Part shown: piece by piece, positions 20,374 to 20,460 of the stretch
How positions within the stretch are numbered: the stretch's first letter is position 1
How the letters are laid out: the number at the start of each line of letters is the position of its first letter
Source: Podarcis vaucheri
Taxonomy: Eukaryota
Length of the DNA: 64,000 nucleotides
NCBI GenBank assembly: GCA_965113315.1
Contig: OZ220369.1
Direction: 5' to 3' (one strand)
The notes under the pieces: generated by a model
What the model saw: only the letters and a program-made list of their open reading frames with translations
Databases searched by the model: none
Told to the model about the DNA's origin: nothing
Made by a program: the position numbers and the translations under genes

Positions 20374-20460
20374 CGATTTAGCATTGACATCAATGCCTGT
20401 TTTGGCGACCATCTCTGCCATCTCAAGATTGCTGTGCTTCACTGCCCAGTGCAGAGCCAT
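20374..20460 (-). CDS. SOWAH: Single internal exon (87 nt, phase 0-0) encoding an ankyrin repeat; Sowah (sosondowah)-like, either functional or a pseudo-exon
   Basis: The minus strand reads tctgttgtttaattcctAG|ATGGCTCTGCACTGGGCA...AATGCTAAATCG|GTAAGT. The 29 codons have no stop: MALHWAVKHSNLEMAEMVAKTGIDVNAKS. This matches the ankyrin consensus (TxLHxAxxxGxxExxxxLxxxGxDVNxx) and, from memory, the Sowah motif TALHWAAKHGN...DVNA(K/R)(S/T). Ankyrin exon call is strong; family assignment is less certain. Confidence 0.72.

Follow-up and report, generated by a model that had tools for sequence, protein, structure and literature searches.

An isolated, spliceable ankyrin exon of probable Sowah origin, conserved among sauropsids within a landscape of non-coding elements

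The window, by which we mean the whole 64-kb stretch of DNA that was analysed, carries on its minus strand a candidate exon of 87 nt encoding one ankyrin-repeat unit, here called ANK1, set among blocks of conserved non-coding sequence. The features discussed below are listed in order of position; identities are to L002, a contig described further on.

17582–19049, strand not assigned: conserved non-coding block of ~1.47 kb, 1.3 kb downstream of the exon, 86.8% and 88.7% identical to L002 12285–12695 and 12828–13707, respectively.
20296–20373, minus strand: 5′ end of the downstream intron, with the GTAAGT donor and TGATGACAG at 20360–20368; its first 26 nt are 100% and its first 40 nt 36/40 identical.
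20374–20460, minus strand: candidate ANK1 exon, 87 nt, phase 0-0, assigned from sequence, frame, Pfam Ank, orthologues, L002 alignment and tree.
20461–20498, minus strand: 3′ end of the upstream intron, with a pyrimidine tract, the AG acceptor and the motif TGATTGACA at 20481–20489; 33/40 nt identical.
20537–20615, minus strand: second conserved intronic flank, with TGATTGACA (20545–20553) and TGATGACAG (20559–20567); 76% over 79 nt to L002 11343–11421.
22435–22992, strand not assigned: conserved stretch of non-coding DNA within the intron that precedes ANK1; 71.8% over 581 columns to L002 10049–10562.
29052–29660, strand not assigned: conserved non-coding block between the exon A block and ANK1; 81.7% over 622 columns to L002 6087–6705.
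30670–30903, minus strand: 'exon A' block, corresponding to the upstream exon that bird and turtle models splice to ANK1; 69% over 242 nt.

Read along the minus strand, the exon and its borders run from ...ctgttgtttaattcctag through ATGGCT...AAATCG to gtaagt. The 87 nt (20374–20460) form 29 codons with zero stops, so that both exon ends are in phase 0. Re-reading the sequence thus bears out an earlier sequence-only reading, which had described an 87-nt minus-strand exon with a pyrimidine tract and AG acceptor, a GTAAGT donor, symmetrical phases and an open frame, and the peptide is exactly as quoted there. The same reading had remarked that the exon is missing from the ORF track; its frame stays open into the intron as far as 20302, giving 53 aa in total, which falls below the 60-aa default of an ORF list and accounts for the omission. 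The residues read through on the donor side (VSDDR...) also occur in the relatives P0001–P0003 and P0022.

The ANK1 unit consists of a helix-turn-helix plus a loop (29 aa). It begins with Met where fish models have Thr, and it carries the family signature of the first ankyrin repeat, (T)ALHWA.KH...DVN.KS. The Pfam Ank model scores 22.4 bits on the exon against a gathering score of 21.1 (E = 1.4e-4), a match that alone is not significant over the ~3,300 six-frame segments of the window, and among solved structures only many-repeat DARPins matched, with summed scores. Because a single ankyrin repeat matches every repeat protein, evidence on the nature of the exon must come from specific relatives.

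Such relatives were found. Searching 5.8 billion sequences with the 53-aa ORF returned six proteins, three of them Logan ORFs and three annotated as 'hypothetical proteins' of birds (Zosterops TRZ14939.1, Pitangus KAJ7402399.1 and Bubo CAM9444605.1), with E = 5e-17 for the best relative and 4e-7 to 2e-6 for the three bird proteins. Profile searches reached birds and turtles at E = 1e-12 to 1e-34, and the unit is present in more than 10 birds and six turtles with 23–25 of its 29 residues identical to the window. The first match beyond sauropsids was a sterlet 'ankyrin repeat domain-containing protein SOWAHC-like'; a second profile search added an eel protein, fish 'SOWAHD' genes (including Tachysurus SOWAHD), SWAHA, the turtle locus LOC144273342 and bird SOWAHA. 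The window exon is identical to the sterlet and eel copies at 17–18 of 29 residues, with a LEMAEM core common to all. The eel protein also has a Sowah-type upstream motif, across which it matches bird SOWAHA at E = 2e-9, and a turtle two-exon fragment aligns to canonical Sowah across both repeats. The sole other vertebrate name in the match lists was an ankyrin-repeat kinase (P0197), a generic multi-repeat match at 30% identity and 46 bits. The Logan ORFs P0002 and P0003 were considered as close relatives of the window and set aside, as it is the bird-like L002 that they match.

The structure of the gene points the same way. In ~30 sequences, covering both fish paralogues, turtles and birds, the same two phase-0 boundaries delimit the ANK1 unit, as read from genomic read-throughs (acceptor ...Q/T, donor S/V) and from spliced models. 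In a tree of 29 columns, the sauropsid copies, the window's included, fall with those of sterlet and eel in a supported clade (96/91), with the SOWAHD-like and SOWAHA rows apart; the alignment is short, and the tree is therefore only indicative. Since birds, turtles, sterlet and eel all have this unit, and fish Sowah genes share its phase-0 boundaries, the exon is very probably a homologue of the one that encodes the first ankyrin repeat in Sowah genes with introns. To judge by these alignments, the source gene is a Sowah paralogue with the LEMAEM signature, as found in the sterlet 'SOWAHC-like' and eel proteins. The attribution to Sowah made in the sequence-only reading therefore holds: its proposed comparison of intron positions shows fish Sowah genes bounded at the same two sites, the closest named relatives are Sowah proteins grouped with the window in the supported clade, and no other ankyrin family with matching exon structure provided the best matches.

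Within the family, likenesses and differences are instructive. The sterlet SOWAHC-like protein (P0020) and the eel protein ANANG_G00202600 (P0139), 21–22/29 identical to the turtle/bird consensus by hand count, resemble the window in the 29-aa ANK1, its phase-0 boundaries, the LEMAEM core and the ending DVN.KS; they differ from it in that ANK1 follows a Sowah 'EW...DP...' exon in one predicted protein, a neighbour that the window does not have. Canonical Sowah proteins (fish 'SOWAHD' P0138, P0142 and P0148, turtle P0185 and bird SOWAHA P0210) show the signature TALHWAAKHG...DVN followed by GYTPLH...TY...RDYSG, and lie in a different clade with 13–18/29 identity to the window. ANK1 is bounded in the fish SOWAHD-like genes just as it is in the window; SOWAHA has a loop insertion and is intronless according to the literature. 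In turtles there is, besides, another Sowah gene, a canonical one of the type called 'SOWAHD' in fish, whose annotation reads only 'uncharacterized' (P0185, Eretmochelys LOC144273342, with P0016–P0019); the P0185 record is 44.0 Mb long, in the same size class as the records with turtle ANK1 copies (43.5–44.3 Mb).

All searches of the window for further exons were run exon by exon. With tblastn, ~40 bird, turtle and fish Sowah fragments matched only 20374–20460 in the 64 kb, and HMMs made separately for the KDF, ANK2 and RDYSG exons gave no match stronger than E = 0.02 over the window, the one at that level proving spurious. By regular expression, tblastn and HMMs, there is no second ankyrin or Sowah-like segment in any frame of the 64 kb, and the description of the exon as isolated stands. 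The next (RDYSG-like) and previous (KDF-like) exons that the sequence-only reading had anticipated were not found in a search covering 43.5 kb upstream and 20 kb downstream. Three candidates were rejected: weak matches at 43000–43324 fall in differing frames in a microsatellite region and are due to chance, as is 'CTVFH' at 16730–16744 as a second repeat, and a second ankyrin exon hidden in the N-run at 18495–18626 is unlikely, this run being the middle of the 1.47-kb conserved block.

Elsewhere in the window, the segments at 13982–14551 (plus strand) and 63124–63801, 34243–34539 and 12518–12589 (minus strand) comprise repeat-derived ORFs, namely an L1 ORF2-like C-terminal part and SINE/LINE tails, and a tRNA-like Rfam match exactly at the gathering score; none of the ORFs has a Pfam match. 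Microsatellites of the (CA)n, (GA)n and (AAT)n types abound. The L1-like and SINE-like repeats, the many microsatellites and the place of the exon among the sauropsid copies point to a lepidosaur as the probable source of the window.

For a genomic comparison, JGI metagenome contigs were scanned with a degenerate pattern, which yielded L001 and L002, two overlapping host-derived contigs from one species (99.96% identical); no contig resembled human sequence. The protein encoded by their ANK1 exon is identical to the Neoaves consensus, and we infer that their source is a bird or at least an archosaur. Between the window and L002, 3.0 of the 13.3 kb of shared span aligns (23%), in collinear islands of 69–89% identity; with so little aligning, the two genomes must have diverged deeply, and the islands make up a dense landscape of conserved non-coding elements (CNEs), which agrees with the 'enhancer-rich' setting proposed from sequence at the outset. 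Such density would lend indirect support to a possible linkage with an Iroquois (Irx) cluster. The block at 17582–19049 is a strong candidate for a long-range enhancer. The masked N-run at 18495–18626 coincides exactly with a 132-nt unaligned hole in this block. The block at 29052–29660 holds a fifth motif of the kind listed around the exon, a copy of TGATTGACA at 29461–29469.

L002 also clarifies what precedes ANK1. The residues that bird and turtle models place before it (...GCTKSADAKE) had been considered as intron read-through, an explanation discarded because L002 shows them to lie in a separate block, exon A, at 3759–3857 and 7.6 kb upstream of ANK1. In the window's exon A block the donor AAAGAG/GTAAC is kept, with the exon end at 30848, and tblastn gives a weak match at 30889–30848. 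The alignment shows that 7 nt have been deleted here, so that the start codon (ATG) of the bird models is gone and the frame is shifted. Conservation runs ~150 nt past the donor, so that this block, too, behaves like a non-coding element. Between exon A and ANK1, at 5741–5792, L002 has an intact 52-nt KDF exon with a T-rich tract, a cag acceptor, the residues ...FKDFT and a gtaaga donor, and this exon joins ANK1 in frame. The window has no counterpart at the collinear place, which is weak evidence of loss since a moderately conserved exon of 17 codons could escape detection at such distance. A tblastn search of L002 with ANK2-bearing bird, turtle and fish proteins gave nothing at E < 0.05 anywhere, the collinear stretch included.

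The kind of constraint acting on ANK1 can be examined by comparing the window with L002 11478–11564. The exon is far more conserved than neutral DNA: 79 of 87 nt (90.8%) and 24 of 29 aa (82.8%) are identical. There are five non-synonymous and three synonymous differences, and dS is 0.18; since neutral sites between these genomes no longer align, the synonymous sites must themselves be constrained. With eight differences from one species pair, dN/dS is 0.42 and not different from 1 (p = 0.36), and the differences are distributed 4/1/3 over the codon positions, with no third-position excess. Conservation is not confined to the exon. Over its first 26 bases the downstream intron matches L002 at every position, and the 40-nt flanks are 82–90% identical, on a par with neighbouring CNEs (82–89%). 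Within 208 nt around the exon there are two copies of TGATTGACA and two of TGATGACAG, the numbers expected over the whole window being 1.2 and 0.7, respectively. All four copies lie on the strand of the gene, and each of them is conserved in L002. Both motifs resemble the recognition site of PBX-MEIS, TGATTGACAG; TGATTGAC, close to the acceptor, could simply be a branch site rather than a PBX/MEIS-type site. The exon is also constrained within the window's own lineage, given that it shares 26 of 29 residues with its relative P0001 while the adjoining intron read-through shares 22 of 45 (p = 2.5e-4).

Nucleotide identity above amino acid identity is the published signature of exons from lost genes that have been recycled as enhancers (Eichenlaub and Ettwiller 2011, PMC3206014), and exons of bystander genes kept as enhancers were described by Dong et al. 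2010 (as cited in PMC3206014). The window exon appears to be of this type, having a coding-exon origin and a constraint that seems to act on nucleotides rather than amino acids, a distinction of low power with eight differences. It is like the published exonic remnants or 'recycled regions' in its homology to a coding exon, in the excess of nucleotide over amino acid identity, in a Ka/Ks that is not low and in its CNE-dense setting. It differs from the medaka recycled exons, in which the frame is disrupted, in that its own frame is open and any enhancer role is putative; moreover, recycled regions originate from whole-genome duplication, whereas the origin of the window exon would lie in retrogene replacement.

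A relic of this kind has precedent in the family. Secondary sources describe the Iroquois–Sowah block as conserved in bilaterians with the exception of tetrapods, whose Sowah genes are reported to be retrogenes; next to Irx, tetrapods are said to keep pseudogenised remains of Sowah that hold Irx cis-regulatory modules (CRMs) (PMC5803294), so that a Sowah relic in a tetrapod would follow an established pattern. Such relics, together with the lack of neighbouring Sowah exons and the conservation of synonymous sites and flanks to the same degree as codons, lead us to favour the reading that the exon is an exonic remnant held by nucleotide-level, probably cis-regulatory, constraint, to which we assign a probability of roughly one half. 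The window exon would no longer be part of an intact Sowah reading frame, and the exon plus ~120 nt of flanks may form one conserved block under nucleotide-level constraint within a landscape dense in CNEs. The likeliest mechanism would be cis-regulatory, with a remnant of the bystander gene carrying or abutting a putative enhancer that includes the four predicted PBX/MEIS-type sites; the intact splice sites may still permit splicing into a non-coding or truncated transcript. The choice left by the sequence-only reading, between a live gene and a well-preserved relic, leans in this way towards the relic, on account of the lone exon and the conserved flanks and synonymous sites, although its preservation would be for non-coding reasons.

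The best-surviving alternative is a realistic, if less expected, one: that ANK1 is a working coding exon of an active, divergent, multi-exon Sowah-derived gene retained in sauropsids, the window's genome included, whose remaining exons fall outside the window or have changed past recognition, and in which the additional nucleotide conservation reflects overlapping splicing or regulatory signals. The open frame and both splice sites, the latter with a strong AG/GTAAGT pair, are intact in every sauropsid copy seen, across birds, turtles and the window's lineage, except for an apparent shift in P0022; a true remnant should show disruption, like those of medaka. Bird and turtle predictions, from independent annotations in more than 15 species, splice ANK1 to a second ankyrin repeat, to the short upstream exon ending KDF and to an RGYSG exon that corresponds to the RDYSG of Sowah. 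In this second repeat the pattern is retained, with 14 of 22 residues shared between turtles and birds and 32 of 33 among Neoaves, and together with the RGYSG exon this means that the gene may still code in those lineages. The well-formed KDF exon of L002, the greater conservation of exon than read-through in P0001 and the known character of Sowah introns, which are long and full of CRMs, are likewise in its favour. The codon test that counts against coding has its eight differences and single species pair to set against it, and other exons of the window's gene may lie outside the 64 kb or have diverged beyond detection. Because of the open frame, the intact splice sites and the second exon conserved in birds and turtles, the live-gene reading is kept alive.

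Against it stand the absence of any other exon over the 43.5 kb upstream and 20 kb downstream, the lack of codon periodicity with dS at 0.18, and flanks conserved as much as the exon. The known models are short ab initio fragments only, and a search of 1.84 billion representatives for a long model with these exons, using the bird fragment P0132 (without ANK1) as query, again returned short fragments only. Key ankyrin residues have drifted: the second repeat is degenerate (TVFH.AAVH... versus TPLH.AALH...) and is missed by Pfam, which counts one repeat in bird and turtle models and two in canonical Sowah, and in birds the ankyrin His has become Asp. The window shares with the bird and turtle fragments (TRZ14939.1, KAJ7402399.1, CAM9444605.1 and Mauremys KIL84_005384) an orthologous exon and the exon A block with its donor, while the second ankyrin, KDF and RGYSG exons predicted in them are not detectable in the window. 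The shift inside the exon in P0022 also speaks against a coding role.

Individual copies show some further peculiarities. The Asp in place of the ankyrin His (TALDW) is found in all birds. In P0005 (Pitangus) and P0012 (Willisornis), the residues after the exon are AS... and not V..., as would be expected if the donor were GC instead of GT. P0022, an ENA metagenome contig of 672 nt, has an apparent 1-nt deletion in codons 2–7 and a changed 3′ end, with its core and donor region unchanged; on this single contig, the change could be that of a genuine pseudo-exon or could stem from misassembly of a run of Gs.

An improbable third explanation is that the exon is spliced into a non-coding or NMD-targeted transcript, with constraint on splicing or RNA function, in the manner of ultraconserved regulated exons. 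The perfectly conserved 26 nt after the donor, the conserved acceptor and branch region, the conserved donor on the non-coding exon A block and the absence of codon periodicity would all be consistent with such a role. The flanking motifs fit transcription-factor sites equally well, however, and neighbouring blocks without splice context are equally conserved. Lastly, the view of the exon as a chance ORF, as part of another ankyrin family or as a piece of a pseudogene in neutral decay, for which the low Pfam score and the promiscuity of a single repeat might be cited, is refuted and has a negligible probability: specific orthologues extend to E = 1e-34 with the named ones being Sowah, the exon boundaries and the supported clade are held in common, and neutral DNA between the window and L002 no longer aligns where the exon is 91% identical, a cross-species conservation that rules out chance.

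The near-invariance of the exon across birds, turtles and the window's genome, the intact splice sites and the non-codon pattern of substitution seem to be unrecorded in the published accounts covered. A broader proposition, which we regard as possible but rather doubtful, is that the intron-containing Sowah gene was never fully lost in sauropsids, where either a spliced, truncated two-repeat gene or an ANK1 exon doubling as an enhancer may have been kept for more than 250 million years in a developmental regulatory landscape; the 'dismantling' of the gene in tetrapods would then be incomplete in this group.

The Iroquois–Sowah block is a textbook example of a bystander gene that another gene's enhancers kept in place until, in tetrapods, replacement by retrogenes released it. 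In this context, a Sowah exon with ~91% identity between deeply diverged sauropsids, intact splice sites and no codon-type pattern is a concrete and testable object. Either a piece of the bystander gene has survived as a gene, or an exon has been kept for a regulatory function that it had or gained, and either outcome would tell us something about the sharing of DNA between coding sequence and enhancers.
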